From Macrostomum lignano (Eukaryota), in NCBI GenBank assembly GCA_002269645.1, contig NIVC01000625.1, positions 124,001 to 188,000 on the forward strand: a stretch of DNA of 64,000 nucleotides, given 5' to 3'. Made by a program: the position numbers and the translations under genes. Shown here piece by piece: positions 2,027 through 63,400 of the stretch. Within the stretch, counting starts at the first letter, position 1. Every line of letters begins with the position of its first letter. The notes beneath the pieces were generated by a model. The model did no database searches. It saw only the letters and a list, made by a program, of their open reading frames with translations, and was not told the DNA's origin.

Positions 2027-4328
2027 ATGCACCTGTGCAGTGCTGGGCCCAGTGCTTTGCGCCAGTTGTTGCTGTTAGCACTGCTTTCTATAGCGGTTTC
2101 TGCTGCACCTGACAAATGCAGCGTCTGCAACCGCCTGACAGAGGCTTTTGAGCAAGGCCTGCAGCGCACCGCCAAGGACAACTTTGGCGGGGGCAACACG
2201 CACTGGGAGGAGAGCCGCCTTGGCAGCTGGGCCAGCAGCGAAACTCGCCTTGTGGACATACAGGTAAAGCATTTGCATCCCAATTGCAGTTTTAATCCTC
2301 TACAAATAAATCTAATTGTTGTTTCACCAGCTCATCCAAATCCAGACACCCGAATCTCGAATTTGAGTATCCCGAATTCCAGAGTTCTGAATCCCAGAAT
2401 CCAAGAATCCCGAATCCCAATAACCTAGAATCCTGAATCCGAGAATCCCAAATCCCAGAATCTCGAATACTGAATCCGAGAATCCCAAATCCCAGAATCT
2501 CAAATCCTGAATCCGAGAATCCCGAATCCCAGAATCCCGAATCCCAGAATCCCGAATCCCAGAATCCCGAATCCCGAATCCCCGAATCCCGAATCCCAGA
2601 ATCTCGAATCCTGAATCCCAAAATCCAGAATCCCATCCCAGAATCTCGAATCCCATAATCCCAGAATCCCGGATCCCAGAATCTCGAATCCCCGAATCCC
2701 GAATCCCAGAATCCCGAATCCCACCATCTCGAATCCCGAATCTCGAATCCCAGAATCCCGGATCCCAAAATTCCGGATCCCAGAATCCTGGATCCCAAAA
2801 TTCCGGATCCCAGAATCCTGGATCCCAGAATCTCGAATCCCAGAATCCCCAATCCCGAATCCCAGAATCCGCGAATCCCAGAATCCCAAATCCCGAATCT
2901 ACGAATCCCAGTTTCGGACGCCCCATCAGGCAGCAACTGAGATGGCCATATAAAACCCTCCGCTGCCTGGCAGGAGCGCCTGTGCTCAGACGAAGGCAAG
3001 GAGGAGGCGGTGGCCTGTCACGCCCTGCTCGAGCAGTTCGAGGAGCCTCTCGAAGGCTGGTGGTTTGGCGACTTCCGCCGAGATCCGGGCAAATCCGCCG
3101 CCAAGGCTGCCGCCGCCCTGCGCGAACTGCTGTGCGTGCGGACCGGCGGCCTCTGCTGCCAGCACGGCGCCTTCGGGCCACAGTGCGCCGCCTGCCCCGT
3201 CTGCGGCCTGCGCGGCCACTGCGACGGCAATGGGACCCGCGCAGGCAGCGGCCGCTGCACCTGCGACTCCGGCTACCGGGGTGAGCTGTGCGACCAATGC
3301 GAGACCGGCCGCTACCTGGCCACCGCCGAGCCGCTCCTCTGTCTCGCCTGCCACCCCGCCTGCGGCTCCGCCGGCTGCGTTGACGGCCCCAGCGAGTCCA
3401 ACTGTCGCGACTGCGCCACCGGCTACCAGCCGGCCGAGGCCTCCGGCGCTGCCGACGGCAGAGTCTCCTGCATCGACGTGGACGAGTGCGCGGCCACGCC
3501 CGGGCCCTGCGCCGGGCCGAACGAAACCTGCGTGAACTCGCCCGGCAGCTTCGCCTGCGACTGTCTGCCCGGCTTCCAGAGACCCGCGGCTGGCGGCGAC
3601 TGCCAGCCCGCGGAGACCGCGGCTGGAACTGACGGCGATTCCGCGGAAACTGGTGGCGATTCCGCGGAAACTGGTGACGATTCCGCGGAAAGTAGCGGAG
3701 AATCCGCGGAAACTGGCGGAGAATCCGCGGAAACTGGCGGAGAATCCGCGGAAACTGGCGGAGAATCCGCGGAAACTGCTACTCCAGCTATGGATAAGGG
3801 TACGTTAGTGTTAGTTGTTACTGCATTCTTATATAACTGCAGCTAGTTACCACCGCTGCCCCCCTTCAACTCTCGCTGCCTCGTTACCACCGCTGCCCCC
3901 TCCTCAGTCCCTCAGTGAGCCACCGCTGCCCCCCTCAGTCCCTCAGTGAGCCACCGCTGCCCCCCCCCTCAGTCCCTCAGTGAGCCACCGCTGCCCCCCT
4001 CAGTCCCTCAGTGAGCCACCACTGCCTCACCCCCAGTCCCTCAGTGTGAGCCACCGCTGCCCCCCCCTCAGTCCCTCAGTGAGCCACCGCTGCCCCCCTC
4101 AGTCCCTCAGTGAGCCACCGCTGCCCCCCTCAGTCCCTCAGTGAGCCACCGCTGCCCCCCTCAGTCCCTCAGTGAGCCACCGCTGCCCCCCTCAGTCCCT
4201 CAGTGAGCCACCGCTGCCCCCCCAGTCCCTCAGTGAGCCACCGCTGCCCCTTCCCCCAGTCTCTGAGTGTGGACCGCAGCCTCTGAGACACCCAGCCGTC
4301 CTTCATCAATATTTCAGAGGAGCTGTGA
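2027..4328 (+). CDS. CRELD2: CRELD2-like protein (cysteine-rich with EGF-like domains), soluble ER form, 3 exons, 357 aa
   Basis: Exons 2027-2263, 2974-3799 and 4318-4328 join in phase (0, then 1) at GT-AG sites. Signal peptide, CSVC (CxxC), the CRELD WE-domain motif NFGGGNTHWEESRLGSWASSETRL, EGF/furin-like repeats, a Ca-binding EGF (CIDVDECAA...CVNSPGSFACDC) and C-terminal KEEL ER-retention signal. Confidence 0.9.
2349..2910. repeat. Degenerate 7-9-mer array (GAATCCC/CCCAGAATC) in CRELD intron 1
   Basis: Visible periodicity; explains the low-complexity ORFs at 2292-3181. Confidence 0.9.
3631..3777 (+). repeat. Coding 21-bp minisatellite, 7 units, encoding (G/D)G(D/E)SAET in CRELD exon 2
   Basis: Unit GGCGGAGAATCCGCGGAAACT, in frame. 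Confidence 0.9.
3850..4260. repeat. About 30-33-bp minisatellite (CTCAGTCCCTCAGTGAGCCACCGCTGCCCCCC) in CRELD intron 2
   Basis: About 12 units with a variable C-run. Confidence 0.9.
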
Positions 4329-6139: not shown

Positions 6140-7320
6140 GCATCTCAACTACCTGTCTGCCTACCACTGCACCTCAGCTACCTGTCTGCCCATCACTGCA
6201 CCTCTGCTACCTGTCTGTGTTCATCACCGCACCTCAGCCACCTGTCTGTGTTCATCACCGCACATCAGCCACCTGTCTGTGTTCATCACCGCACCTCAGC
6301 CACCTGTCTGTGTTCATCACCGCACATCAGCCACCTGTCTGTGTTCATCACCGCACATCAGCCACCTGTCTGTGTTCATCACCGCACATCAGCCACCTGT
6401 CTGTGTTCATCACCGCACATCAGCCACCTGTCTGCCCACCACCGCACCTCTGCCACCTGTCTGTGTTCATCACCGCACATCAGCCACCTGTCTGCCCATC
6501 ACTGCACCTCTGCTACCTGTCTGTGTTCATCACCGCACCTCAGCCACCTGTCTGTGTTCATCACCGCACATCAGCCACCTGTCTGCCCACCACCGCACCT
6601 CTGCCACCTGTCTGTGTTCATCACCGCACATCAGCCACCTGTCTGCCCACCACCGCACCTCTGCCACCTGTCTGTGTTCATCACCGCACATCAGCCACCT
6701 GTCTGCCCACCACCGCACCTCTGCCACCTGTCTGTGTTCATCACCGCACATCAGCCACCTGTCTGTGTTCATCACCGCACATCAGCCACCTGTCTGTGTT
6801 CATCACCGCACATCAGCCACCTGTCTGCCCACCACCGCACCTCTGCCACCTGTCTGTGTTCATCACCGCACATCAGCCACCTGTCTGTGTTCATCACCGC
6901 ACATCAGCCACCTGTCTGTGTTCATCACCGCACATCAGCCACCTGTCTGTGTTCATCACCGCACATCAGCCACCTGTCTGTGTTCATCACCGCACATCAG
7001 CCACCTGTCTGTGTTCATCACCGCACATCAGCCACCTGTCTGTGTTCATCACCGCACATCAGCCACCTGTCTGTGTTCATCACCGCACATCAGCCACCTG
7101 TCTGTGTTCATCACCGCACATCAGCTACCTGTCTGTGTTCATCACTGCACATCAGCCACCTGTCTGTGTTCATCACCGCACATCAGCCACCTGTCTGTGT
7201 TCATCACCGCACATCAGCCACCTGTCTGTGTTCATCACCGCACATCAGCCACCTGTCTGTGTTCATCACCGCACATCAGCTACCTGTCTGCCCATCACTG
7301 CACGTCTGCTACCTGTCTGC
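6140..7320. repeat. 31-bp minisatellite (CACATCAGCCACCTGTCTGTGTTCATCACCG) with shorter variants
   Basis: About 38 units; source of the three overlapping 350-412 aa ORFs. Confidence 0.95.
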
Positions 7321-7451
7321 CCAATTGCTAGACCATTCTGCCGCTATATTTTATCAGGCAATATAAGCTTAGATTTGAAAAAAAGTCAATCAGATTTGAA
7401 CCAGCACAGCTTATGATCAGTCTGAAAGTTAATAACGAAATCCCCAGTCAG

Positions 7452-8903
7452 TTACAGCAGTTGCTCAGCCTGGATGCTCCGCAGCGCCCGCTGAATGAGC
7501 TGCCTGAAGCCGCGTTCGTGCGCCAGGCTCATCATGAGCGACTCCATCGGCTTCTCAGACATCTTGGCGAGCATCACCGCGGTGCCGTGTTCGCCCGAGA
7601 ATGCGTTGAGGAACGCGGTCTCCTTGCCGGTGTCGGCGAGGCCGCTAAGCAGGCGGTGCAGCTCAGCGTCGGAGAGGCCGAGAGGCTGCTGCGAATCCGC
7701 GGCCTCCGGCAAAGACGAGGCAGCCGGGGCGGCGGCGGCCGACGGCACCGTCGTCTGGCGCTGCAGGTCGCCCGCCGGCGCGGTGCACATGCCGCTGTCT
7801 ATGGTGCCCACCGCGCTGCCAGCCGACTTCAGCCAAGTCTCTTCCGCTGCTGCCGCCTCATTTCCGCCTGCGGCCTCCGAGATGCCCGGCTGCAGCTGCT
7901 GCTCGAACAGCTCCTTGAGCTCCGGTCGGTCGGCGGCGAGCTCCTCGGCCGTGACGCCGTCGCTGTCCTCCTCCAGCGGGTCGGCGCCGCTGTCCAGCAG
8001 GAACCTGACCGCCCGAGCGGCCCCGGCACTCACAGCTGACATCAGCGGTGTCCACCGCTTGCCGCGGTGCTGCCTCTCGTCCAGGTTTACGCTGATGCCG
8101 GCATCTCTGGCGAACTGCAGCAGCGGGCTCAGCATGTCCTCCCTGTCCCGAGCTGCCATCATGTGAAGCACCGTGTCACCCGCCCGGTCATTCATGTGGA
8201 TGGCGGCAGACACCTGTCCCGCTGCGAGCCGGCCCTCCTCGATCAGCCTCTTTGTAACCCGCAGACCGGAGACGAGCACCTCCGTGGACTCCTCCAGCGC
8301 GCAGTGGTGCAGGAAGTTCCTACCGTCGTTGTCGTACAGTCGGTGAAGCTGGGTCGGCTCCCGGATCAGCAGGCGCTCCATCAGGCTGTCGGCTGAGCTG
8401 CCGCTCTGCGTGCTGAGCATGAGCAGACTTTCTCGATGGCGAGTCCGATCGTCAAGGGCGTCGGGGTTTCGCTTGACCGCAATGTCCACCAGCTTCTCGG
8501 CCCGCTCGCCCTGCTGCCTCGCCAGCGCGGACGCCATCGGGTTGTCGCCATCGCTGTTGTGGACTCTCAGCATCTCGGAGCTGTCCTCGAACGCCTTCAG
8601 GAGGATGTCCTCACAGTTGTCGCCCTCGCTGTACTGGTGCATCGCTGTAGCCAGGATTCTGGGGTACTCGAGCAGCAGGCGGCGCTGCATGTCCTGCGGC
8701 AGGGAGCGAAACCTCAGCGATTCCGGAGTCTCAGGAGCTGGGCCATCAGCTCCCAGACTTAACTGCTGCATTTGGTCTTCCACACTGATGTCGCTGGCTC
8801 TTGCAGGTTTTTTGCTTTTCTCTTCTAATTTTTTATCCATGAGCAAGTCTGCTTTTTTATTGGCTAGGTCTATTCTGCAATGCAAAACATCATTTTCATA
8901 CAT
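7452..8903 (-). CDS. Ankyrin-repeat protein with DSGxxT motif and C-terminal death-fold-like domain, paralog A (5' end uncertain)
   Basis: 483-aa ORF. Ankyrin motifs GRNFLHHCA, AGDTVLHMMAA, WTPLMSAVSAG...FLLDSGADP, DGVTAEELA; DSGMCT at 7782-7799; helical tail. A possible splice acceptor (ttgcag|) at 8875-8877 means the true start may be spliced or the internal MDKKL. Confidence 0.8.
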   Translation of the reverse strand: MYENDVLHCRIDLANKKADLLMDKKLEEKSKKPARASDISVEDQMQQLSLGADGPAPETPESLRFRSLPQDMQRRLLLEYPRILATAMHQYSEGDNCEDILLKAFEDSSEMLRVHNSDGDNPMASALARQQGERAEKLVDIAVKRNPDALDDRTRHRESLLMLSTQSGSSADSLMERLLIREPTQLHRLYDNDGRNFLHHCALEESTEVLVSGLRVTKRLIEEGRLAAGQVSAAIHMNDRAGDTVLHMMAARDREDMLSPLLQFARDAGISVNLDERQHRGKRWTPLMSAVSAGAARAVRFLLDSGADPLEEDSDGVTAEELAADRPELKELFEQQLQPGISEAAGGNEAAAAEETWLKSAGSAVGTIDSGMCTAPAGDLQRQTTVPSAAAAPAASSLPEAADSQQPLGLSDAELHRLLSGLADTGKETAFLNAFSGEHGTAVMLAKMSEKPMESLMMSLAHERGFRQLIQRALRSIQAEQLL

Positions 8904-10573
8904 TTTACATACATTTCTTTTAATTTTAACAGTCTATACCATATGCACTGATACTATACAAAGTATAGATATAAAAGTTTATGATAAGGAACTACAATTT
9001 TAGTTTATTAGATATTTTTTAAACAAAAAATTGTATGAATTAGACATAAACAGATATTTTTTTACTTATTTTTTGCTTTAACTAAATAATGGATTATTAT
9101 AAACTATTCAATTGTGATACAAAATATTTTGAATAACAAACAAGGTATTCATCACAGGTATGGATCCAGAAAATTTTAAATGGGAGGATGCAGATTACTA
9201 AGGTATATGTAATATACACTCAGCAACATCAAAAAGTCGCCATCACAGAAGATTCCTTTTTGAGAGGGCAGCAGGTAAAGTCTCTCAATCTTTGCGAGTG
9301 ACGCAACTTAGCTACACCGTGGCAGACTTGAGTTGAGGAACAAAGTGGGGGGAGTGGTGTGCAAGGGTTGGATGGATCATAGCTACCCCAATCAGTTTTC
9401 TTGTATATTTTATTTCAGAATAGTCCAAGAGAAATTGCTCACTGGCGCATAGAGTGGCAACTTTTCAACATTGCTGAGTATATATATATATATCATATAT
9501 ATGCATATCATATTACATATATGAGACAGGCATTAATAATAGCTCTAATACTTTTAAATTTTATTTGTTTTATGTTTGCCTTTCTTAGAAAAACCTTTAT
9601 TCAAATCTGCGCAAAATATTTGTTTGAATGTTGTGGTTTGCAAAAATATTTCTGCAATTATTATTTTGTTTAAACTATAATGCATTGTGGGTATAAATAG
9701 ACATGCTGAGCAGACTTGAGGAAGCAACCATTTGCTGCCTCTTGGTTTTTCGATAAGCAAATTTAGTTTGTTCTAAATATTGAAATCGCTTAAAGACTTA
9801 ATCATTTCTTAGAGTATAAGAGCCCCAATTGGGAGTATCAGAAACCGCTACAAGCGAGAAACCGCCTCAGGGCAGTAATAGTAAATTCGCCTCAGGGCAG
9901 GAGAACCGCCTCAGAGCGAGGGAAAGATCGCCTCAGGGCAGAGAAGGAGCACAAGCTGTGACCCTCTGATCCAGGGAACGCCCAGGACTGAGAGAATAAT
10001 ATTAGAGAAAGTATAGGAATAGAATAGACAGTGCTATTAGACCGCTTAGGCCAGAAAAGTACGATAGAAGTACATATGCTACCAATAGAAAGACAATTAA
10101 TAACCAGTAGAATTATTAAGGAGAAATAGCTTTATTACAACTTTGGGTGGCAGTTAGGATTCTCAGTGTACAGGGAAAAGCACTGTGACAACTTGGTAAC
10201 AGCAGAGGGATTTTGTATCGTACAGAAGAAACCCCTAGTACAACTTGGTGGCATAACAGTGGAATTCTCATAGAGAGCCAAAAGGCCTAGTAAAGCTAGC
10301 AAAAGAATAATTAAGAGCCCTGTAACATATATATATGTACACAATAATGTGTATTTTCCATATAAGAAATAAAAAAAAATCTAACTCAATGAAGGATGGC
10401 CTGTGTACCTCCCCCAAAGTCTGCCACTGATTCAATATTATTTATATAGTTTTAAAATATGATTAGGCCTAAAGTCTTTGCAAATATATTTTAACTAGGC
10501 CTAAGCCCTAAGGCTATAGCTTCATTAAACTCGTTGTATAGGCCTAGACATTATGTTATATGAATGGTGAAAG

Positions 10574-11479
10574 ACCTGTATAACTTTCGCCGACACATTT
10601 TCAGACAGATCTTCCGACACATTTTACGACACTTAAAATGTCGCAAAGTGTCAGAAAAAGTGTTGGAAAAGTTGACATTCGCCGACACATATTTTCCGAC
10701 ACCTAAAGTAATGCTGCAGTGTCTGATGCTTTACTTCTGCCAACACATCTTCCGACACTTAAAATGTCACTTCTTAGAGCGAGGTCATATACATGTAGCT
10801 CGTACTATTCATGTTAGCTTCATGTATGTTTGTTAAGGTACTGCAGCAGACTGCAGTGTTGCGCATCATTTAGTTGCATCAATTGATATACACACGTATA
10901 TGTACATGTAATAGTTGGCATTTTCTGATTACAAACAGTACGAGCGTATGTATTGTAAATGAGGGCATGATATTTTCAGTGTCAAATGTATTCGCAGTCA
11001 AATTAATACAAAAAAATGCTAGCTATAATTACTAAGTAAATACATAATACTAAATCCCAGTGAAGTCAGAATATCAGATAATCGTAGTATGGCACTCCAA
11101 AGTAATACGAATCGAAAGCTCGATCTAATTAATGTCCAAATTTTTGAACATTACGGATACTAACTTTTTCGAAATACTTTGTGCATACATGTAGCTACAT
11201 TTACATGACCTCGCTCTAAGAAGTGACATTTTAAGTGTTGGAAGATGTGTTGGCAGAAGTAAAGCATCAGACACTGCAGCATTACTTTAGGTGTCGGAAA
11301 ATATGTGTCTGCAAATGTTAACTTTTACGACACTTAAAATGTCGCAAAAAGTGTCGGAAGATCTGTCTGAAAATGTGTCGGCAAAAGTTAACCGTTGCGA
11401 CACTTTTTGCGACATTTTAAGTGTCGTAAAATGTGTCGGAAGATCTGTCTGAAAATGTGTCGGCAAAAGTTATACAGGT
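10574..11479. mobile_element. Foldback/MITE-like element with long internally repetitive inverted arms
   Basis: Left arm 10574 to about 10800 (ACCTGTATAACTTT...GAGCGAGGTCAT) is the reverse complement of the right arm about 11200-11479. The arms are built from CGACAC/GTGTCG sub-repeats. No clear TSD. Confidence 0.75.
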
Positions 11480-13154
11480 ATAGGAAAGGCTAGGCTTATG
11501 AAAACAAATCCTTTGCATTTAGACTTAAATAGCCCCCCTCTAAGAGTTTGTACAAAGGCATCATTCATCAAGCAAGCCTTTTTTAAATTAAAATATACTA
11601 AACAGACTAAGCTTGCTTTGCCTTTGTTGGGCTCCTATCCTATGCTATGAGATCTATAGTAAAAAATATTTGGAACCATTGCTAAATAAATATTTAATGT
11701 TATGTTATTAAGACAGATTACTAGATTAGTAACTAACAATTAAACTGAAATTTCTAATTTAATGTAATATATGGAGGGCTAATCTTTAGTTCCAATTTTC
11801 CAAGATAGGCCCTAGGCTTAGACATAAGTATGAGCATGACACTATTCATCAAATTAAATAGTTGGCCCTAGAAAGAAATGTTTTTATATTTAAAGATTTC
11901 TAAAATTAATCGGCTACTGGTCACATAGATAGAGACAACTCATTTCAGTGGGGTTTAGCTGTTAAAACCTTTTGTAGGGTCTAATATAAAATAATTATTT
12001 AAAATTAATAATAGATAGTCGGGACTAAATAAAGCAAGTGACTGCCAATTTAATTTATAAACTTCACAAGTCTAAATAGAAAATAAATGTCAATGATATC
12101 TCGAAAAGAAATTCCATGATGCAATTAAATAATTTAGGACAATGAAAAAACACAAATCAATACCTATTGAAACATAATAATTCAATTAAGGAAAAGAAGT
12201 CCCCGGATAATTCATGGAAGAACGAGCGAAGTAGCAGACAAGACAAATACAACAAGGTACCAAACTTGGCCCTAACGCAAGTCCAAAACGAAATTTTAAA
12301 CGCGGCAGCTCCACGGCAGTTCCACGGCAGTTCCACGGCTAGTCCGTATGCATTCTCTTTCTGTGTCATGGAAAAACCCTTGGCAAGCCTGGATATACTC
12401 GTCAGTAGTGAAGAGTGAAATAAAAAATTCTGAATATTGAGGGTGGCAGAAATAAGAAATGTTGAAATTTTCATCGTTTTAACAGCTAAATGAACTTGAA
12501 GAGCAGATCGCAGTTGCTTTCTAATTCTACACAGTTTTTTAACCGCTTTATGGGCATCTTTGCAACCTGAGAGAATCTTGGAGGTTGGAGAGGGAGCCCA
12601 ATAACTGGGGATCTAAAGACTGTGGGCCCAGCCTGAGCATCTGGGAGGAGTCATATCGAAATTGTCTCACAAAAATCCTAAATCCATTATTCCCTTTTTA
12701 GTGTGAAGTGACAAGAAAAATGCCAGGAAGAAGTCTTCATATTTTTATCTCTTCAATGAGTAGTGACACATGCTTTTACATTGTATTATAATTTGAGGTA
12801 ATTTACAAAGCCCTTTAAATATTCATATCGATGGCAGGGTATTGGATGCACAAACACAAGATCAGAGTATAATGACATGTATAAAAAACTATAAACTGAC
12901 GTATACAAGCGTATGCTGTTGAGGCTACTAAACTATGAAGACTATCGGGGATAATATACATGGTTTTAGTACAAACAGTGTAAGATTTTAGTAGCTATAT
13001 GGATATAGTGTATACCAGCGCAAGTGAACAAGAAGAGCAAACATATGGAATTTTAAACAGTTGTGATGAGGCAAGAACTATTAAGTGGCTAAATTAGTCA
13101 AGTAGCAGTTAAGCTGCACAGCTCAGTTTGCACTGGGGCAAACCGTGCAGCTTA

Positions 13155-14498
13155 TCAACCTTCTTTAACTTCTTTGAAGGCTTGAAGCAGAGTTTCCCTG
13201 CTCACGTGATGGCCATGGGCTCCCCAGATGCTCAGGGCGGCTCTGAGGGGCCGCTCAGAAAGGGTTGCTAATCCAGTGTGATCTGGCAGACGATCATCAA
13301 GAATGCGGAAGAGTGCGCTGAAGAATGCCGAAGTCTTGCCAGTGCTCAACAGTTGGTCCTCCAGACTCGCTAAGTCCATCTCAGAGAGCTCACTGCCCCG
13401 TTGAGGTTCAGCCGAGGCGACACTCGGCGCACTGAGAGACGACACACCGCTGTCAATGGAGCGCACCTGCCCCAACCCGCAATTTGTCAGCCACGATTCG
13501 GCTTTGACCATCGGCGGGACGGCATCGCAACTCGAGTCCGGGTTGTCTTCCTCAGCCTCAGCGATCTCCATGTCTTCTGAGTGCTCGGACTGAAGCAGCT
13601 CCTTGAGCTCCGGTCGGTCGGCGGCGAGCTCCTCGGCCGTGACGCCGTCGCTGTCCTCCTCCAGCGGGTCGGCACCGCTGTCCAGCAGGAACCTGACCGC
13701 CCGAGCGGCCCCGGCACTCACAGCTGACATCAGCGGTGTCCACCGCTTGCCGCGGTGCTGCCTCTCGTCCAGGTTTACGCTGATGCCGGCATCTCTGGCG
13801 AACTGCAGCAGCGGGCTCAGCATGTCCTCCCTGTCCCGAGCTGCCATCATGTGAAGCACCGTGTCACCCGCCCGGTCATTCATGTGGATGGCGGCAGACA
13901 CCTGTCCCGCTGCGAGCCGGCCCTCCTCGATCAGCCTCTTTGTAACCCGCAGACCGGAGACGAGCACCTCCGTGGACTCCTCCAGCGCGCAGTGGTGCAG
14001 GAAGTTCCTACCGTCGTTGTCGTACAGTCGGTGAAGCTGGGTCGGCTCCCGGATCAGCAGGCGCTCCATCAGGCTGTCGGCTGAGCTGCCGCTCTGCGTG
14101 CTGAGCATGAGCAGACTTTCTCGATGGCGAGTCCGATCGTCAAGGGCGTCGGGGTTTCGCTTGACCGCAATGTCCACCAGCTTCTCGGCCCGCTCGCCCT
14201 GCTGCCTCGCCAGCGCGGACGCCATCGGGTTGTCGCCATCGCTGTTGTGGACTCTCAGCATCTCGGAGCTGTCCTCGAACGCCTTCAGGAGGATGTCCTC
14301 ACAGTTGTCGCCCTCGCTGTACTGGTGCATCGCTGTAGCCAGGATTCTGGGGTACTCGAGCAGCAGGCGGCGCTGCATGTCCTGCGGCAGGGAGCGAAAC
14401 CTCAGCGATTCCGGAGTCTCAGGAGCTGGACCATCAGCTCCCAGACTTAACTGCTGCATTTGTTCGTCAACTGGTTCCACGTGAGGCATGCTGCGCAT
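13155..14498 (-). CDS. Ankyrin-repeat protein with DSGxxS motif and C-terminal death-fold-like domain, paralog B
   Basis: 447-aa ORF. 289 codons give the same protein as paralog A. DSGVSS at 13437-13454. Tail contains P-x-x-A-L-x-x-W...vs.e.LlqAf.ev, resembling death-domain helices 4-5. A TAG acceptor at 14508-14510 lies just upstream of the ATG. Confidence 0.8.
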   Translation of the reverse strand: MRSMPHVEPVDEQMQQLSLGADGPAPETPESLRFRSLPQDMQRRLLLEYPRILATAMHQYSEGDNCEDILLKAFEDSSEMLRVHNSDGDNPMASALARQQGERAEKLVDIAVKRNPDALDDRTRHRESLLMLSTQSGSSADSLMERLLIREPTQLHRLYDNDGRNFLHHCALEESTEVLVSGLRVTKRLIEEGRLAAGQVSAAIHMNDRAGDTVLHMMAARDREDMLSPLLQFARDAGISVNLDERQHRGKRWTPLMSAVSAGAARAVRFLLDSGADPLEEDSDGVTAEELAADRPELKELLQSEHSEDMEIAEAEEDNPDSSCDAVPPMVKAESWLTNCGLGQVRSIDSGVSSLSAPSVASAEPQRGSELSEMDLASLEDQLLSTGKTSAFFSALFRILDDRLPDHTGLATLSERPLRAALSIWGAHGHHVSRETLLQAFKEVKEG

Positions 14499-14859
14499 TG
14501 CTTGGGCCTAACGCTTTGCTTGTTGTAGATATATGAGCAGATTATAATTTAGTTCCAGGTTCAAAGCCTGCAAGCGTATTATAAATATACCCAGGTTAGA
14601 ATTCTTGCCCGCGGCCGTTCTTTTGGTAACCCGCGAGCAATCCACGGATTCGTCTGAACGATGCTATTTTTAGCACTGGCATAATATGGAACCGCGTAAA
14701 GCGAACGTACTTTGACAGGCACACAATGTGGACCAGAATTTGCTATGCTTTTACTTTAAATTCACTGTCTAAGCTCTAAGCTATTTAATAATTGCTTCTT
14801 CAAGACTATAACCACTGCTAATGCTCAATGTCCAAAAACTGTTTTCTTTAGACCAATTC

Positions 14860-16700
14860 ACTGCTTCCCTCAGTCCAGCCCGCTGTTCCCCCAGTCCAAC
14901 CCGCTGTTCCCTCAGTCAAACCCACTGTTCCCTCAGTCCAGCCCGCTGTTCCCTCAGTCCAGCCCGCTGTTCCCTCAGTCCAACCCACTGTTCCCTCAGT
15001 CCAGCCCGCTGTTCCCTCCGTCCAACCCACAGTTCTCTCAGTCCAGCCCGCTGTTCCCTCAGTCCAACCCGTTGTTCCCTCAGTCCAACCCACAGTTCCC
15101 TCAGTCCAGCCCGCTGTTCCCTCAGTCCAACCCGTTGTTCCCTTAGTCCAACCCACTGTTCCCTCAATCCAGCCCGCTGTTCCCTCAGTCCAACCCGTTG
15201 TTCCCTCAGTCCAACCCACAGTTCCCTCAGTCCAACCCACTGTTCCCTCAGTCCAGCCCGCTGTTCCCTCAGTCCAGCCCGCTGTTCCCTCAGTCCAACC
15301 CACTGTTCCCTCAGTCCAGCCCGCTGTTCCCTCAGTCCAACCCACAGTTCTCTCAGTCCAGCCCGCTGTTCCCTCAGTCCAACCCGTTGTTCCCTCAGTC
15401 CAACCCACAGTTCCCTCAGTCCAGCCCGCTGTTCCCTCAGTCCAACCCGTTGTTCCCTTAGTCCAACCCACTGTTCCCTCAATCCAGCCCGCTGTTCCCT
15501 CAGTCCAACCCGTTGTTCCCTCAGTCCAACCCACAGTTCCCTCAGTCCAACCCACTGTTCCCTCAGTCCAGCCCGTTGTTTCCTCAGTCCAACCCACTGT
15601 TCCCTCAATCCAGCCCGCTGTTCCCTCAGTCCAACCCACTGTTCCCTCAGTCCAGCCCGCTGTTCCCTCAGTCCAACCCACTGTTCCCTCAGTCCAGCCC
15701 GCTGTTCCCTCAGTCCAGCCCGCTGTTCCCTCAGTCCAACCCACAGTTCTCTCAGTCCAGCCCGCTGTTCCCTCAGTCCAACCCGTTGTTCCCTCAGTCC
15801 AACCCACAGTTCCCTCAGTCCAGCCCGCTGTTCCCTCAGTCCAACCCACAGTTCTCTCAGTCCAGCCCGCTGTTCCCTCAGTCCAACCCGTTGTTCCCTT
15901 AGTCCAACCCACTGTTCCCTCAATCCAGCCCGCTGTTCCCTCAGTCCAACCCGTTGTTCCCTCAGTCCAACCCACAGTTCCCTCAGTCCAACCCACTGTT
16001 CCCTCAGTCCAGCCCGTTGTTTCCTCAGTCCAACCCACTGTTCCCTCAATCCAGCCCGCTGTTCCCTCAGTCCAACCCACTGTTCCCTCAGTCCAGCCCG
16101 CTGTTCCCTCAGTCCAACCCACTGTTCCCTCAGTCCAGCCCGCTGTTCCCTCAGTCCAGCCCGCTGTTCCCTCAGTCCAACCCACAGTTCTCTCAGTCCA
16201 GCCCGCTGTTCCCTCAGTCCAACCCGTTGTTCCCTCAGTCCAACCCACAGTTCCCTCAGTCCAGCCCGCTGTTCCCTCAGTCCAACCCACAGTTCCCTCA
16301 GTCCAGCCCGCTGTTCCCTCAGTCCAGCCCGCTGTTCCCTCAGTCCAGCCCGCTGTTCCCTCAGTCCAACCCGCTGTCCCAGTCCCACCTGCTGTCTTCA
16401 CAAGGTCAACCCACTGTTTCTCCAAGGTCAACCCACTGTTTCCACAAGGCCAATCGACTGTTTCCCCAAGGCCAACCCACTAGTCTAACCCACTGTTTTC
16501 CCAAGGTCGATCCACTGTTTCACCAAGGCTAACCCACTTTCCGCAAGACCAACTCAAAAGCCAACCCACTGTTTACCCAAGGCCAACCCACTGTTTCCCC
16601 AAGACCAACTCAAAAGCCAACCCACTGTTTACCCAAGGCCAACCCACTGTTTTCCCAAGGCCGACATACTGTGTTATCAAGACCAACCCTCGTTTCTCAG
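14860..16700. repeat. 21-bp minisatellite (CTGTTCCCTCAGTCCA(G/A)CCC(G/A)) with a degenerate CCAAGGCCAACCCACTGTTT tail
   Basis: About 72 units to about 16390, then a decayed related array; source of ORFs at 14821-16532. Confidence 0.95.
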
Positions 16701-17222: not shown

Positions 17223-20123
<2,901 letters not shown>

Positions 20124-24035: not shown

Positions 24036-25433
24036 ATGGCGCTGCTCCCAGACCTCCGCTCCGGCCCGCTGCTGGACGTCGAGGAATTTCAAATTGACAG
24101 CGACAGCGAGAACGGCGACGCCGACGTCCCGACGCCCTGCGCGACGCCCACCGGGGAGGAGGGCGAGGCGGCAGCTGAGCCTCGCCGAGGCCTCCTGGGC
24201 CGCATCGCCTTCCTGGAGGCGGAGGCCGAGAAGCTCATTGAGCACAGCCGCGGCTGCCGCGGCCACGCTGATGAGATGCAGTCCCTGCTGGCCCGGCTGC
24301 ACGACCAGAAGGCCGCCCTGCAGCGCCTGCTGGGAGCCGGCGACGCTGGTCCCGAGCTCGATTCCTGGGAGGAACCCTGCGACCTGACCGAGCACACGGC
24401 TCGGGCCTACCTGCAGTGGCTGCGCCGCCTGCTGCACGACCTGTCGCAGGCGGTGGACCAGGCGGCCAGCGGGGCCGTCCTCGCCTCCGCCAGTGCCGCA
24501 GGCGCCACCGCGCCCCGCCTGAGCGGCCGGCGTCGGCGAGACGCGCCCAGCCGGATCTTCCCGAACCTCGAGGCGCTGGACATCGCCGCTGTTGACAATG
24601 GATCCGGCGACGTCTTTCATCAGCCTGGCGAGGCCGGCGACTTGCGTGACTCGCCGGGCGAGGGCGGCACCGGCTGGGAGCCGCTGCCCCGCCAGGCGCT
24701 CTACTGTGTGGTTGGCGACGCCCGCCGCGTCACCGTCGTGGGCCTCGGTGGGCAGCTGCTAGCGCGGACGCGGCTGCGCGGCGGCGGCTGCGACGAGCAG
24801 GAGGCGGAGGCGGGCAGCAACCTGGAGCGGATCAACTATCTGCGCTGCTCCGGCCGGCTGCTCCTGTCGGACAACCAGAGCCTGTACATCTGCGACCGCT
24901 GCTGCCGCGTGCTCCGCTGCCTGCACGGCTTCAGCTGGGTTGTTGGGCACTGCGTTGACGAGCCGGCCGACCGGCTGTACATCGTGGACCGCGTCAACGA
25001 GTTCTTGTCCGTGTACGGCCTGGCCAGACTTGGGGAGCTCGACCGCCTCGCTCACCGCGACTTCACCGACGGCATCAGCTCGGTGACGGCCCTGGCCCGC
25101 ACTCTGTTCGTTGCCGATCGCGGCGCCAACGCCATCTTCGCCTTCGAGACCGAGTCGCTGCAGCTGGCCTTCCGGGTGCCGCTGCGAAGCCCGCTGTTCA
25201 TCACTTCAGACTGGCGCGGCGGCTGCCTCTACGTCACCGTGGGCGGCCGGGACAACACCGTGCGGATGCTGGACGGCCAGGGCCAGCTGCGCCGCTCCCT
25301 GTCCGGCGGCCGCGGCTCGCAGCCCGGACAGTTCGGCTCGCCTGGTGGCCTCACCGTCTCTCTGGACGGCACGGAGCTGTTCGTGTGCGACCTGGACAAC
25401 CGGAGGGTGCAGGTGTTCGGGCTGGGGGGCTGA
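24036..25433 (+). CDS. Coiled-coil + NHL-repeat beta-propeller protein, single exon, 465 aa
   Basis: GC-rich ORF with accATGG start. C-terminal NHL repeat GRGSQPGQFGSPGGLTVSLDGTELFVCDLDNRRVQVF and preceding blades (LYIVDRVN, LFVADRGANAIF, LYVTVGG); N-terminal heptad region RIAFLEAEAEKL...LARLHDQKAALQRLL. Confidence 0.85.
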   Translation: MALLPDLRSGPLLDVEEFQIDSDSENGDADVPTPCATPTGEEGEAAAEPRRGLLGRIAFLEAEAEKLIEHSRGCRGHADEMQSLLARLHDQKAALQRLLGAGDAGPELDSWEEPCDLTEHTARAYLQWLRRLLHDLSQAVDQAASGAVLASASAAGATAPRLSGRRRRDAPSRIFPNLEALDIAAVDNGSGDVFHQPGEAGDLRDSPGEGGTGWEPLPRQALYCVVGDARRVTVVGLGGQLLARTRLRGGGCDEQEAEAGSNLERINYLRCSGRLLLSDNQSLYICDRCCRVLRCLHGFSWVVGHCVDEPADRLYIVDRVNEFLSVYGLARLGELDRLAHRDFTDGISSVTALARTLFVADRGANAIFAFETESLQLAFRVPLRSPLFITSDWRGGCLYVTVGGRDNTVRMLDGQGQLRRSLSGGRGSQPGQFGSPGGLTVSLDGTELFVCDLDNRRVQVFGLGG

Positions 25434-25512: not shown

Positions 25513-26170
25513 GTCTAGATTAGCAATCCATTCTATTCCTGCACCCATGATAGGCTAGATTAGCAATCCATTCTATTCCTGCATCCATGATAGGCTAGAT
25601 TAGCAATCCATCCTATTCCTGCACCCATGACAGGCTAGATTAGCAATCCATTCTATTCCTGCATCCATGATAGGCTAGATTAGCAATCCATTCTATTCCT
25701 GCATCCATGATAGGCTAGATTAGCAATCCATTCTATTCCTGCATCCATGATAGGCTAGATTAGCAATCCATTCTATTTCTGCATCTATGATAGGCTAGAT
25801 TAGCAATCCATTCTATTCCTGCATCCATGATAGGCTAGATTAGCAATCCATCCTATTCCTGCACCCATGACAGGCTAGATTAGCAATCCATTCTATTCCT
25901 GCATCCATGATAGGCTAGATTAGCAATCCATTCTATTCCTGCATCCATGATAGGCTAGATTAGCAATCCATTCTATTCCTGCATCCATGATAGGCTAGAT
26001 TAGCAATCCATTCTATTCCTGCATCCATGATAGGCTAGATTAGCAATCCATTCTATTCCTGCACCCATGATAGGCTAGATTAGCAATCCATCCTACTCCT
26101 GCATCCATGATAGGCTAGATTAGCAATCCATTCTATTCCTGCACCCATGATAGGCTAGATTAGCAATCCA
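25513..26170. repeat. 40-bp minisatellite (TAGGCTAGATTAGCAATCCATTCTATTCCTGCATCCATGA), array 1
   Basis: About 16 units; same unit as 43307-44662. Confidence 0.95.
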
Positions 26171-26541: not shown

Positions 26542-28166
26542 TTTAGGGTCATTGAGATTGGTTCTGTCAGATTTAGGGTCATTGGCATTGATTCTGTCAG
26601 CTTTAGGGTCATTGGCATTGATTCTGTCAGATTTAGGGTCATTGACATTGGTTCTGTCAGATTTAGGGTCATTGACATTGGTTCTGTCAGATTTAGGGTC
26701 ATTGGCATTGATTCTGTCAGCTTTAGGGTCATTGACATTGATTCTGTCAGCTTTAAGGTCATTGACATTGATTCTGTCAGCTTTAGGGTCATTGACATTG
26801 GTTCTGTCAGATTTAGGGTCATTGGCATTGATTCTGTCAGCTTTAAGGTCATTGACATTGACTCTGTCAGCTTTAGGGTCATTGACATTGATTCTGTCAG
26901 CTTTAGGGTCATTGACATTGATTCTGTCAGCTTTAGGGTCATTGACATTGACTCTGTCAGATTTAGGGTCATTGACATTGGTTCTGTCAGATTTAGGGTC
27001 ATTGACATTGGTTCTGTCAGATTTAAGGTCATTGACATTGGTTCTGTCAGCTTTAGGGTCATTGGCATTGATTCTGTCAGCTTTAGGGTCATTGGCATTG
27101 ATTCTGTCAGATTTAGGGTCATTGACATTGGTTCTGTCAGATTTAGGGTCATTGACATTGGTTCTGTCAGATTTAAGGTCATTAACATTGGTTCTGTCAG
27201 CTTTAGGGTCATTGGCATTGATTCTGTCAGCTTTAGGGTCATTGGCATTGATTCTGTCAGCTTTAGGGTCATTGACATTGACTCTGTCAGCTTTAGGGTC
27301 ATTGACATTGATTCTGTCAGCTTTAGGGTCATTGACATTGACTCTGTCAGCTTTAGGGTCATTGGCATTGATTCTGTCAGATTTAGGGTCATTGACATTG
27401 GTTCTGTCAGATTTAGGGTCATTGACATTGGTTCTGTCAGATTTAAGGTCATTGACATTGGTTCTGTCAGCTTTAGGGTCATTGACATTGATTCTGTCAG
27501 ATTTAAGGTCATTGACATTGATTCTGTCAGATTTAGGGTCATTGGCATTGATTCTGTCAGATTTAAGGTCATTGACATTGATTCTGTCAGATTTAGGGTC
27601 ATTGGCATTGATTCTGTCAGCTTTAGGGTCATTGGCATTGATTCTGTCAGCTTTAGGGTCATTGACATTGATTCTGTCAGCTTTAGGGTCATTGACATTG
27701 ACTCTGTCAGCTTTAGGGTCATTGACATTGATTCTGTCAGCTTTAGGGTCATTGACATTGACTCTGTCAGCTTTAGGGTCATTGACATTGGTTCTGTCAG
27801 ATTTAGGGTCATTGACATTGGTTCTGTCAGATTTAGGGTCATTGACATTGGTTCTGTCAGATTTAAGGTCATTGACATTGGTTCTGTCAGCTTTAGGGTC
27901 ATTGACATTGATTCTGTCAGATTTAAGGTCATTGACATTGATTCTGTCAGCTTTAGGGTCATTGACATTGGTTCTGTCAGATTTAAGGTCATTGACATTG
28001 GTTCTGTCAGCTTTAGGGTCATTGACATTGATTCTGTCAGATTTAAGGTCATTGACATTGATTCTGTCAGCTTTAGGGTCATTGACATTGATTCTGTCAG
28101 ATTTAAGGTCATTGACATTGACACTGGCTCTGTCAGATTTAAGGTCATTGACATTGGTTCTGTCAG
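26542..28166. repeat. 30-bp minisatellite (TTTAGGGTCATTGACATTG(A/G)TTCTGTCAG(C/A))
   Basis: About 54 units; source of the 550-570 aa ORFs. Confidence 0.95.
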
Positions 28167-28497
28167 AATTAGTTTCTTTGACACTGGATTAAGGCGTTAG
28201 TGTACTTTTTCATCTTTGCTATCGATTTAGTCAGATTTTGATTGCACTCATTTGCTTCTGTAGTTGAATATCTGTAGTATTAAATTGCTGTAATTACTTT
28301 TCCTGTCTGTGCTTTACTAATAACTATGCTAGAAGATCATTATGTACAGTTAATGCACCGCTGTCAGTTGGTCAGCTCTGCAAGCTACTGCTGCTAGTTA
28401 GCTAATGCCTGGCTGATTTCACTCAAGCCTGGAACTGGAAGGCTGGCAAAATGTTTATTGTTTTCCTATTTTCCAACCTCTGATCTTTTGGTCATAC

Positions 28498-30529: not shown

Positions 30530-47035
<16,506 letters not shown>

Positions 47036-52914: not shown

Positions 52915-53606
<692 letters not shown>

Positions 53607-54002
53607 TAGTAAAACAGGCTCACTTGAGTGTCCAAAACAAAAGTTCGCACAAGCAGTTTGAGTCTCTGTTCTCCTGTTATGTTTCAAACCCGGCAGCTTG
53701 GCTTTGAATTTTAACTTCCCAAGCCCTCATTGCAATTCCAATATCTGCATATGTCTCACACCCCCTCTGCCCATGTCCCGCTCACGAGGATCCCAGCCCC
53801 GAGTTCGGCCCTCGCCTGTTGGGTGTCGATCGATACGGGAAGCCCGACACCCTCGCCACCGACTCTGGGGCGAGTCCGTGACTCAGCGAGTGAGCAGTGG
53901 GGCGCAACTGTCCGTGGGCGGCTCCTTGAACTGAGTGGTTTGTGCGGAGAATTTGATAATTGCCACACTTTGTATGCAGCATTTGCAGCAAGCAGTTTCT
54001 GT

Positions 54003-60466: not shown

Positions 60467-63400
60467 CTAAGACAGACAGACAGACGGATAGACAGACAGA
60501 CAGACAGACAGACACTAAGACAGACAGATAGACAGACAGACAGACACTAAGACAGACAGACAGACAGATAGACAGACAGACAGACACTAAGACAGACAGA
60601 CAGACAGACAGACAGATAGACAGACACAGACGAACAGGCTAGCGCAGACAGACAAGCGCAGACAGGCACTAACCCATTCCTGTCCATAGCTGTCCTCCAA
60701 GTCGTTGACCCCCTCGCTGTCCCACTCCTTGCGCAGGCCGAGCAGGCGGGAGGGCAGGAAGCCGTTCTCAGCCAGGATGACAAAGTACACGAAGAAGCCG
60801 CCGCTGGCCTGGATCATGCCGATCTGGCCGTAGGCCATGCTGATGAGGCGCTCGTTAACCAGATTGTCGTGCTGCGGGTCGCGCGGCCTCCTCTTCATGA
60901 TGTCGCTCTCGGCCTCCTCGTAGGCCAGGGAGATGGCGGGCACCATGTCGGTGCCGAGGTCGATGCACAGGATGGTGATGGTGCCGAGAGGCAGCGGCAC
61001 GTCGGCCAGGATGAACAGCAGGAAGGGCGAGATCTCCGGGATGTTGGAGGTCAGCGTGTAGGCGATGGACTTCTTCAGGTTGTCGAAGATGATGCGGCCC
61101 TCCTCTACGCCGGTAACAATGGACGCGAAGTTGTCGTCAAGGAGAATCATGTCGGCGGCCTGCTTGCTGACGTCGCTGCCGGCGATGCCCATGGCGACGC
61201 CGATGTCGGCCTTCTTTAGCGCCGGGGAGTCGTTGACACCGTCGCCCGTGACGGCCACGATGGCGCCCTGGCGCTGGCAGCCCTCCACGATGATGAGCTT
61301 CTGCTGCGGGCTGGTGCGGGCGAACACGATCTCCACGTGGTGGCGCAGGATTTCGTCAATCTGGGCCGGGGTCATGTCGCGCAGGTCGCTGCCGTGGACA
61401 ACGCAGGCCTGGGCCTCGCGGGGGTTCACCATGGACGGGTCCATGTTGCGATCCTTGGCGATGTCCTCGACGGTCTTGTTGGTCGGGCTGATGATGCCGA
61501 CGCCCTTGGCGATGGCCTTGGCGGTGATCGGGTGGTCGCCAGTCACCATGATGACCTGCGGCGGGCGGAGAGTCGGTGAGCCGTCATCAGCGAAGTACAA
61601 GATTCAGGAGTTGATGAGTCATCGGGATTCATGGGTCAGACGTCCCGAGTCCTGGGTCAGGATCCAATAGTCGTGGGTCACCAGGATCCAAGAGTCGTGG
61701 GTCACCAGGATCCAAGGGTCAGGATCAAAGAGTCGCGGGTCACCAGGATTCAAGGGTCAGGATCCACGAGTCACGGGTCAGCAGAATTTAAGGGTCAGGA
61801 TTCAAGAGTCACGGGTCAGCAGGATTCAAGGGTCAGGATTCAAGAGTCATGGGTCAGCAGGATTCAAAGGTCAGGATACAAGTCGCGGGTCAGCAGGATT
61901 CAAGGGTCAGGATACAAGAGTCGCGGATCAGGTATAGTGGGCCCAGCTTGACCCACCTTGATACCGGCGGAGCGGCACTTCTCCACAGCGTCGGGCACGG
62001 CGGCACGGGGCGGGTCGATCATGGACATGAGGCCCACGAAGCGCAGGTTCATGAGCGGGAAGTTCTGCTCCTCGGGGTCGAAGGCGAATCCGTCAGCGTA
62101 CTCCTCAGCGGGCAGGCGGAAGTCGCAGAATCCCAGCACCCGCTCGCCCATGCCGCCGAGCTCCTCGTAGGCGGTATTGAAGGCGCTCTTCCACTCGTCG
62201 TCCATGACGACGTCCTTGCCGTTGATGAGGATGTGTGAGCAGCGGTCCAGGATGCGCTCGGGGGCGCCCTTCATCACCAGCAGGAAACGCTTGTCTCCAT
62301 CGTCAGTCTTGTGGATGGACACCTGGTACTTGTTGGTGCTGTTGAAGGGCACTTCGCACACCTTGGTGTTCTTCTTGCGGTACTCGCTGACCCCGCCGAT
62401 GCTGAGCTCCACGCACTTGAGCAGGGCGCTCTCGGAAGCGTCGCCGTTGCACTCGCGCTTGAGCACGGGCTTGGACTCCTCGCCGGCCTTGAACTCGGCG
62501 CGGTTGCACAGCATGGCGCAGCGGCTCAGGGCGATCCACTCTGGCGATGACTTGTTGTACTCGGCCGTGTTCTGCTCTTCAGAGGTGTCCGCCTCCAGGA
62601 TGCGATTGTTGCACCACATGTGGGCCACGGTCATGCGGTTCTGCGTCAGGGTGCCTGGGTGAGGGAATGCGCGGGTTGGGCTCTGTGATGCTACTGTGAG
62701 TAGTGCAGGTCAATAGCTCAGCTTCAATACTGCAGCCAGATGAGGTGATAATGGTGTCTAAAGCCGGGGGAAAGGAGTTGGCAATCCAGAATCTGGTGCT
62801 GGGTCTCCATGGCTGAGGCGAACTAAAAAGGACACATGCGAGCCATCTGGCAAAACTCCCACACTAGCAAAACTATAATGTGGGCCTGAGTAGCCTCTCT
62901 CTTCTCCAGTGAGCAGCTTGTTAGCTCGTTATCGGAGGCCTCCGGGCCGGCGGTCGATGCCCAGGGAAGCCCGGCTCCCCTGCCGCACTTGCCGGCCAGG
63001 AGTCCCCCAGCTACCAACTCAGGCTGGAGTAGGGAGGGGGAATGGATAGATGGAATTAATCATGACATGGACTCGCCTGACTGACTGACACCCTGCAAGT
63101 GCGGAATCAGATAATCACCTCATTGACCTGCGCTCCCTCATCTGAGTCTCGCCTGACCACCGATTGAAAAAACCTGAGAAATCCTCATGACTGCAAATCC
63201 TGACACCCTCTTGACTGCAAATCCTGACACCCTCTTGACTGCAAATCCTGACACCCTCTTGACTACAAATCCTGACACCCTCTTGACTGCAAATCCTGAC
63301 ACCCTCTTGACTAAAAATCCTGACACCCTCTTGACTGCAAATCCTGACACCCTCTTGACTAAAAATCCTGACCGGACACAGTTTAGCTGACAAGCTGACA

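Follow-up and report, generated by a model that had tools for sequence, protein, structure and literature searches.

Probable gene conversion of an ankyrin-repeat core between two old tandem paralogs of Macrostomum lignano with diverged tails

The DNA analysed here, which we refer to as the window, is a stretch of 64 kb that is 100% identical to contig NIVC01000625.1 of the Macrostomum lignano assembly GCA_002269645.1. It contains two genes, A and B, which lie on the same strand as complete, intronless open reading frames (ORFs; Table 1). Each encodes a protein of ~450 amino acids (aa) with five to six ankyrin repeats and a helical bundle of ~70 aa. In both proteins, an N-terminal region is followed by the ankyrin repeats, a predicted disordered linker with a DSGxx(S/T) motif and a C-terminal five-helix bundle. 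Searching Pfam yielded Ank_2 with E = 3e-14 and 53.5–53.8 bits (cut-off 27.3), and Ank, Ank_3, Ank_4 and Ank_5 passed their thresholds too; Pfam domains other than ankyrin repeats were not found in either protein. Gene A has two candidate starts, the ATG at 8903 and the ATG at 8840, the latter located after an acceptor-like ttttgcattgcag that ends near 8876. No further copy of A or B was detected within the window by tblastn.

The two genes share a core of 867 nucleotides (nt), which begins 12 codons past the ATG of B and ends directly after the last ankyrin repeat. At an offset of 5688, the two copies of the core differ at exactly two positions, 7986 and 8742, both of which are GGC/GGT third positions of glycine codons on the minus strand and hence synonymous. 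Identity measured in 30-nt windows drops from 1.0 to 0.2–0.5 at each edge of the core and reaches background within ~30 nt. Besides the core, no direct repeats were found that link the flanks of A and B or the 4.25-kb spacer between them. The original prediction, made by eye from the letters of the window, had described this match with its two silent differences and abrupt edges as well as the unduplicated spacer, and alignment confirms all of these as written. We additionally performed a run test on a protein-guided codon alignment of the A and B ORFs, which comprises 1287 aligned nt with 242 mismatches. The longest run with at most two mismatches measured 867 nt, compared to a maximum of 105 in 10,000 permutations of the 242 mismatches.

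Outside the core, the relationship between A and B is distant. Their tails show 30% identity over 104 columns (E = 2e-5; BLASTP, single comparison) and 43% identity on the nucleotide level, and the weak tail alignment reported earlier is thus real. Between the cores, synonymous divergence (dS) is only 0.0096 and nonsynonymous divergence (dN) is 0. Between the tails, the proportion of synonymous differences (pS) reaches 0.80 and is saturated, with a value of 0.82 in the well-aligned helical domain alone. Homology continues in frame beyond both core edges, as VEDQ versus VDEQ upstream and as the tail alignment downstream. This low-level homology indicates that the tract was overwritten inside pre-existing homologs. 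Purifying selection alone was rejected because the synonymous sites of the core are identical too. Likewise, a recent whole-gene duplication followed by fast change of the tail was rejected because of the saturated synonymous sites of the tail and because neither spacer nor flanks are duplicated.

A third paralog provides an outgroup for this comparison. Searching 1.84 billion representative proteins with a hidden Markov model of the A and B tails returned only P0002 and P0007 (E = 5.8e-5). P0002 is the subgenome copy of B and the representative of the family cluster. P0007 (BOX15_Mlig006948g2, 412 aa), here termed paralog C, is encoded on a different, unlinked contig and has two near-identical subgenome copies, g1 and g3. 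Paralog C shares the architecture of A and B, and the start of its protein is homologous to the N-terminus of B. Unlike A and B, it carries a single phase-0 intron, 483 nt long, behind codon 76. The core proteins of A and B are 100% identical, whereas each of them is 50.2% identical to that of C. In the tails, identity is 29.7% between A and B, 32.4% between A and C and 31.0% between B and C. The trees of the two segments are therefore in conflict, as the tails of A, B and C form a star and the cores of A and B collapse together. A and B are old paralogs, as initially suggested, since the synonymous sites of their tails are saturated and these tails are as far apart as either is from C. Their ankyrin segment, with a core dS of ~0.01, was homogenised recently. 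Near-identical cores together with star-like, saturated tails leave a non-reciprocal transfer limited to the core as the only coherent reading.

A full-length word search of a 5.8-billion-protein database recovered family members of M. lignano and generic ankyrin proteins only. Neither in this search nor in that of the 1.84 billion proteins with the tail profile were homologs found outside M. lignano. Alignment-mode profile searches of the 5.8-billion-protein database with the tail and with the N-terminal region were empty, the family itself included, and are uninformative either way. The best matches among PDB sequences were NOMPC, ankyrins and designed ankyrin proteins, and we found no literature specific to these locus names or to gene conversion in M. 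lignano. The family is uncharacterised and is seen only in Macrostomum lignano among the databases searched.

Table 1. Features of the A/B locus and its surroundings (coordinates of the window; GC3, GC content at third codon positions; pLDDT, predicted local distance difference test)
Feature	Position	Strand	Description
Gene A	7452..8903	-	continuous ORF, 483 codons + stop; identical to database protein P0001
Core copy in A	7908..8774	-	867 nt, 289 codons; N-terminal conserved region and all ankyrin repeats
A-specific tail	7452..7907	-	151 codons + stop; GC3 0.85
A motif DSGMCT	7782..7799	-	in linker predicted disordered (pLDDT below 50)
A C-terminal five-helix bundle	7476..7670	-	model pLDDT 82-86; best PDB matches are death domains
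Spacer between A and B	8904..13154		4.25 kb, not duplicated, AT-rich (GC 0.35); carries foldback element
Gene B	13155..14498	-	continuous ORF, 447 codons + stop; own ATG 36 nt upstream of core
Core copy in B	13596..14462	-	867 nt; two synonymous differences from A core
B-specific tail	13155..13595	-	146 codons + stop; GC3 0.61
B motif DSGVSS	13437..13454	-	matches DSGxxS form; in linker predicted disordered
B C-terminal five-helix bundle	13161..13382	-	pLDDT 72-90; top three PDB matches are p75NTR death domain
Foldback/MITE-like element	10574..11479		in A-B spacer; nested inverted repeats
Minisatellite downstream of A	6165..7319		~38 copies of a 31-nt unit
Minisatellite upstream of B	14859..16481		~1.6 kb, ~77 copies of a 21-nt unit
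ORF with sub-threshold Ank_2 match	18576..19100	+	runs into (CTGT)n array
(CTGT)n microsatellite	19096..19622
(CTGT)n microsatellite	52915..53607
Coding fragment	3010..3846	+
Coding fragment	24036..25433	+
Coding fragment	60587..61600	-

M. lignano has been described as carrying three subgenomes with a single-nucleotide polymorphism divergence of ~2.2% genome-wide and ~1.1% in coding sequence (PMC10733133). Two more of its contigs carry the arrangement B-spacer-A, NIVC01001583.1 (L001) and NIVC01000108.1 (L003), and together with the window (L002) these three contig copies fit the three reported subgenomes. Our comparison of the core covers seven copies on these three contigs, all from one assembly and with few informative sites. 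The A and B cores differ at 0 of 867 positions in L003, which also carries a hybrid gene, at 2 of 867 in the window and at 9 of 867 in L001. At both sites that differ in the window, the A core of L003 has the B state, and at one of them the B copy of L001 shares its state with the A copies of L001 and the window. The switch from shared to gene-specific sequence falls at identical columns in all seven copies. Gene B is intact in its three subgenome copies (447, 447 and 450 aa), and its subgenome copy is available in GenBank as PAA66171.1 (BOX15_Mlig014147g1). In the A copy of L001, a 1-nt deletion in the core (locus coordinate ~16332) truncates the gene model to 236 aa (PAA66170.1). It may be a real pseudogenising mutation or a long-read indel or sequencing error. 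In age, the main homogenisation roughly matches the subgenome split, and at least some exchange took place after it. The L001 pair has apparently escaped conversion from then on.

The additional gene in L003 is located upstream (locus coordinates 1019–2541) and is annotated as PAA90531.1 (BOX15_Mlig031275g1, 453 aa). It combines the 5′ flank and start of B with the core and an A tail that is identical to the A tail of the window. Unequal crossing-over between A and B cores would be expected to yield such a hybrid, in which the switch lies inside the core. The 3′ junction of the hybrid lies 12 nt past the A stop codon and leads into the 21-nt minisatellite that is normally found upstream of B. 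As both junctions abut repeats, this gene is either a real product of unequal crossing-over or duplication, or an assembly mis-join. The contig of the window is itself a mosaic. Positions 14720–12879, the B half, are without substitutions relative to L003, and positions 9056–7420, the A half, are without substitutions relative to L001; the remaining parts of 7420–14720 differ from L001 and L003 by 0.5–2.7%. This mosaic is due either to recombination among subgenome copies or to the assembly having switched haplotypes.

Very probably, A and B are old tandem paralogs whose 867-nt core has been homogenised by non-reciprocal homologous recombination. According to this model, A and B are each a complete single-exon gene. 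Gene conversion, accompanied by unequal crossing-over as a side effect, would have homogenised the segment comprising the N-terminal region and the ankyrin repeats, and the tails and 5′ ends outside the exchanged tract would have diverged to saturation. Tails and 5′ ends that are too diverged to pair would explain the sharp edges of the tract. On the protein level, identical ankyrin surfaces may bind one partner, and the tails may differ in what they recruit. Gene conversion of the core between old paralogs was the central proposal of the original prediction and is right; the broader interpretation built on it is partly supported.

Several points weigh against this model. The L001 pair keeps its 9 differences, a value close to the subgenome divergence, and conversion has thus not been frequent in every copy. 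One main replacement shortly before the subgenome split with a few later events fits the data too. With 2–10 informative sites in the core, the direction and number of events are not resolvable. All data stem from one PacBio assembly of a polyploid genome, and the hybrid copy and the between-contig mosaic could be partly assembly products. Finally, the putative function of the proteins rests on predicted folds with non-significant matches.

It is possible, if less likely than not, that the 867-nt segment was pasted in a single chimeric event shortly before the subgenome split, with little or no later exchange, be it by one long conversion tract, a template switch or a partial duplication. The common tract edges of all seven copies would suit a single event, as would the 9 differences in L001, which are approximately what subgenome divergence alone predicts. 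Base composition points in the same direction. The core has a GC3 of 0.82, similar to the A tail (0.85) and to C (0.81–0.83) and unlike the B tail (only 0.61), which hints at copying from A to B. This suggests that the core is compositionally at home in A and that A may be the donor. Alternatively, the low GC3 of the B tail may reflect weaker constraint, and GC-biased conversion is a possible further contributor to the pattern. A single event is, however, at odds with the A core of L003, which matches the B cores at the two sites that set the other A cores apart, with the variant state common to both paralogs and with the existence of a hybrid gene whose junction lies inside the core. Moreover, homology-dependent conversion could not have started at a core protein identity of ~50%, as is seen relative to C. 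If the cores were too diverged for a homologous start, a one-off event would require a non-homologous mechanism that was in frame at homologous codons on both sides.

Short-term selection was assessed by comparing B in the window with B in L001. The core contains 7 synonymous and 2 nonsynonymous differences (pN/pS ~0.09). The tail contains 0 synonymous and 7 nonsynonymous differences plus a 2-codon indel, leaving pN/pS undefined (pS = 0). This contrast between core and tail in B is significant (Fisher p = 0.003): the core is under purifying selection and the B tail has an excess of amino-acid changes. Taken alone, the substitution count of the B tail does not depart from neutrality (P = 0.16). 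Of the seven tail changes, four lie clustered directly before the DSG motif, and the motif itself is unchanged. The combination of a constant core with a fast-evolving tail, which had been put forward from the A/B comparison, is hence also seen between subgenome copies of B.

The same tail data could be read as decay. In this case, B would be a degenerating duplicate without a selected variable module, its tail drifting and its core intact only because A overwrites it. The deviating GC3 of the B tail would be in line with this, and so would the tail's seven nonsynonymous changes, lack of synonymous ones and indel, given their compatibility with neutrality. We nevertheless consider decay unlikely, as all three subgenome copies retain an intact B ORF and the prediction of the helical domain is more confident for B than for A. 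Furthermore, B has kept residues in common with C, among them DSGxxS and, in the penultimate helix, a (L/F)S(I/L)W segment.

The original prediction had also referred to an ankyrin exon segment and considered that A and B might be alternative terminal exons of one locus. Neither idea is supported, as the ORFs of A and B each code for a complete protein without an intron. A single transcription unit with alternative 3′ terminal exons or mutually exclusive exon blocks would be in keeping with the common strand, the distance of 5.7 kb, the acceptor-like ttttgcattgcag 27 nt into the ORF of A and the database fragment P0001, which is without a start methionine. Such an arrangement is very improbable, however, because each block holds a whole conserved protein from its N-terminus onwards. 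B has its own ATG 36 nt before the core, and its L001 copy is annotated from this ATG. The full protein of C starts at the homologous position, which means that nothing is missing upstream. In addition, the region upstream of B consists of the 1.6-kb minisatellite and unrelated sequence, and the acceptor-like site of A could just as well serve spliced-leader trans-splicing, a process that occurs in M. lignano.

An assembly artefact, by which only one core exists or multi-mapping polishing made similar cores identical, is scarcely credible. In its favour, the genome is neopolyploid, 93% of its read pairs have more than one mapping locus, copy-number errors have been documented for it (PMC10733133), and the window contig is a mosaic of L003 and L001. 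Against it, B-spacer-A occurs on three separate contigs, where both the flanks and the 4.25-kb spacer are unique sequence. The in-frame junctions of the two cores lead to different tails and different 5′ ends, and the cores of L001 are still told apart by 9 real differences. Polishing could blur a divergence of ~1% but could not turn sequences as diverged as the tails into identical ones. With three independent contigs and two different in-frame junctions per copy, the assembly chimera that had been named as a possible pitfall is very unlikely.

To characterise the tails, we utilised AlphaFold models built on five-sequence alignments. In the model of the A tail, the first half, which holds the DSG motif, is disordered (pLDDT below 50) and precedes the five-helix bundle (pLDDT 82–86). 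The B tail has the same layout, with a bundle pLDDT of 72–90. Comparing both models with the PDB by Foldseek gave no significant match, the E-values of death domains ranging from 0.5 to 8. Death-fold chains nevertheless rank high, with five among the 12 best matches for A and five among the 8 best for B. Four death-fold chains per list have template modelling (TM) scores of 0.39–0.54 (target-normalised) and root-mean-square deviations (rmsd) of 3.3–4.1 Å, all with E of at least 0.5. For A, the death-fold matches include ASC, UNC5H2 (TM 0.52), a p75NTR/TRADD complex (0.52) and NF-kappaB p105 (0.54), and those other than ASC have an rmsd of 3.3–3.6 Å. For B, three p75NTR death-domain entries (E 0.5–1.5, TM 0.48–0.53, 23–27% identity) are followed by the death domains of p105 and TRADD. 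PDB matches outside the death fold have TM values of at most 0.27 with an rmsd of at least 7.7 Å, and matches in a viral fold library have TM values of at most 0.36 with an rmsd of at least 6.2 Å, so that both groups stay within a TM of 0.38.

On the sequence level, Pfam Death, CARD, PYD and DED gave no match at E up to 10 with the full proteins, the tails or the isolated helical domains, and no death domain was found when PDB sequences were searched with a profile of the tails. Membership of the Death family (Pfam PF00531) by sequence is accordingly not apparent. The only PDB sequence matches of the tail profile were to the helical part of filovirus VP35 (E ~0.9, 39 residues), which we took as chance; the match is non-significant and finds no support in the viral fold library. 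The C tail has a sub-threshold match to PF24410 (wHTH-Hsp90_Na associated; 19.9 bits versus a cut-off of 23, 27 residues), which is probably also due to chance. The death domains of p75NTR, UNC5H2 and TRADD are the best structural neighbours of both predicted tails, with TM values of 0.48–0.54 (target-normalised), an rmsd of 3.3–3.9 Å over 75–80 columns and 9–27% identity. They differ from the tail models in helix number, as a death domain has six helices and the models have five. The designation as death-fold tails, introduced with the original prediction, is thus tentative. The best Foldseek matches, at TM ~0.5, speak for it, whereas the non-significant E-values and the lack of a Pfam Death match do not. 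On balance, the models make a death-domain-like fold of the A and B tails likely.

A motif of the form [IV]DSG[MV]xx[ST] is kept in A (DSGMCT), B (DSGVSS) and C (DSGVQS). The linkers around it show little conservation otherwise and have a disordered prediction. Its two hydroxyl residues are S370 and T374 in A and S350 and S354 in B. The form DSGxxS is the beta-TrCP phosphodegron known from IkappaB and p105. Judging by its sequence, the motif may act as a phosphodegron.

The spacer between A and B contains a foldback element resembling a miniature inverted-repeat transposable element (MITE), with arms of 74 nt at 99% and 143 nt at 94% complementarity and 12-nt subrepeats of type TTTTACGACAC. 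Collinear spacer alignments indicate that it is apparently present in all three subgenome copies. Both minisatellites flanking the locus give long spurious ORFs on either strand. The window as a whole is rich in minisatellites, with more than 35 arrays that have periods of 9–74 nt and span 0.1–1.6 kb each, for example 25515–26170, 26542–28183, 34007–35064, 37885–39199, 43305–44669 and 54643–56104. One 40-nt unit is common to the arrays at 25515–26170 and 43305–44669. There are also two long (CTGT)n microsatellites (Table 1). The ORF that runs into the first of them has a sub-threshold Ank_2 match (E = 2e-5, 25.4 bits versus the cut-off of 27.3) and is unrelated to the A/B/C family (BLASTP E = 0.82). 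The coding fragments near the locus include a calcium-binding EGF domain, an NHL repeat and the C-terminal part of a P-type cation ATPase, in agreement with the genes called around the locus in public contigs.

The A/B locus offers a clean and quantifiable case of segment-restricted concerted evolution, with a dS of 0.01 in the core, saturated flanks, an outgroup paralog and three subgenome replicates. It should be useful for studying gene conversion and unequal crossing-over soon after polyploidisation in M. lignano. The uncharacterised family, with its ankyrin repeats, DSG motif and death-domain-like bundle, may matter to cell-death or stress signalling in this regeneration model. A link to innate-immune or cell-death signalling had been proposed from the outset; it is not supported beyond being an inference from the architecture.

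The predicted architecture of A and B is reminiscent of the C-terminal half of NF-kappaB p105/p100 and of IkappaB. All share an ankyrin block followed by a death-domain-like helical bundle and a DSGxxS-type motif in a disordered segment, and both tails have the p105 death domain (2dbf) among their structural matches. However, the order differs. In A and B, the ankyrin repeats are followed by the DSG motif and then by the helical bundle, whereas the degron of p105 comes after its death domain. Pfam also detects no Rel homology domain in the A and B ORFs, unlike in p105/p100, and no sequence homology to IkappaB or NF-kappaB was found, with no IkappaB among the top 60 PDB sequence matches. Proteins of the ANKDD1A/B type likewise place a C-terminal death-fold-like domain behind ankyrin repeats at a similar total size, and ankyrins and DAPK1 also pair ankyrin repeats with a death domain. 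A and B differ from the ANKDD1A/B type in that neither sequence homology nor a Pfam Death match was found. One speculative reading, which we regard as quite doubtful, is that the family represents a flatworm-specific adaptor resembling the inhibitory C-terminal half of p105, in which recombination through the core reshuffles promoters or N-termini with alternative death-fold tails. Platyhelminthes have been reported to be without p50/p105 (PMC11432056). If this reading were true, a p105-like adaptor with ankyrin repeats, a beta-TrCP-type degron and a death domain would exist in a phylum reported to lack p105, and the core would serve as a recombination cassette and a source of adaptor diversity, with the annotated hybrid as an example, and not merely as a passive conversion tract.

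When comparing the locus with known cases of partial concerted evolution of tandem paralogs, the similarity is evident. The primate gamma-globin genes, RHD/RHCE and the red/green opsins are the classic examples. As in these systems, a tract that is near-identical also at synonymous sites lies inside diverged tandem duplicates, with sharp borders, conflicting segment trees and hybrid genes formed by unequal crossing-over. The mechanism, segmental gene conversion with occasional unequal crossing-over, is textbook knowledge, and the locus reveals nothing new in this respect. What differs from gamma-globin, RHD/RHCE and the opsins is the extreme contrast between a dS of 0.01 within the tract and saturation outside it, the extent of the tract, which covers about two thirds of the coding sequence, and the fact that the event can be traced over three subgenome copies of a neopolyploid.

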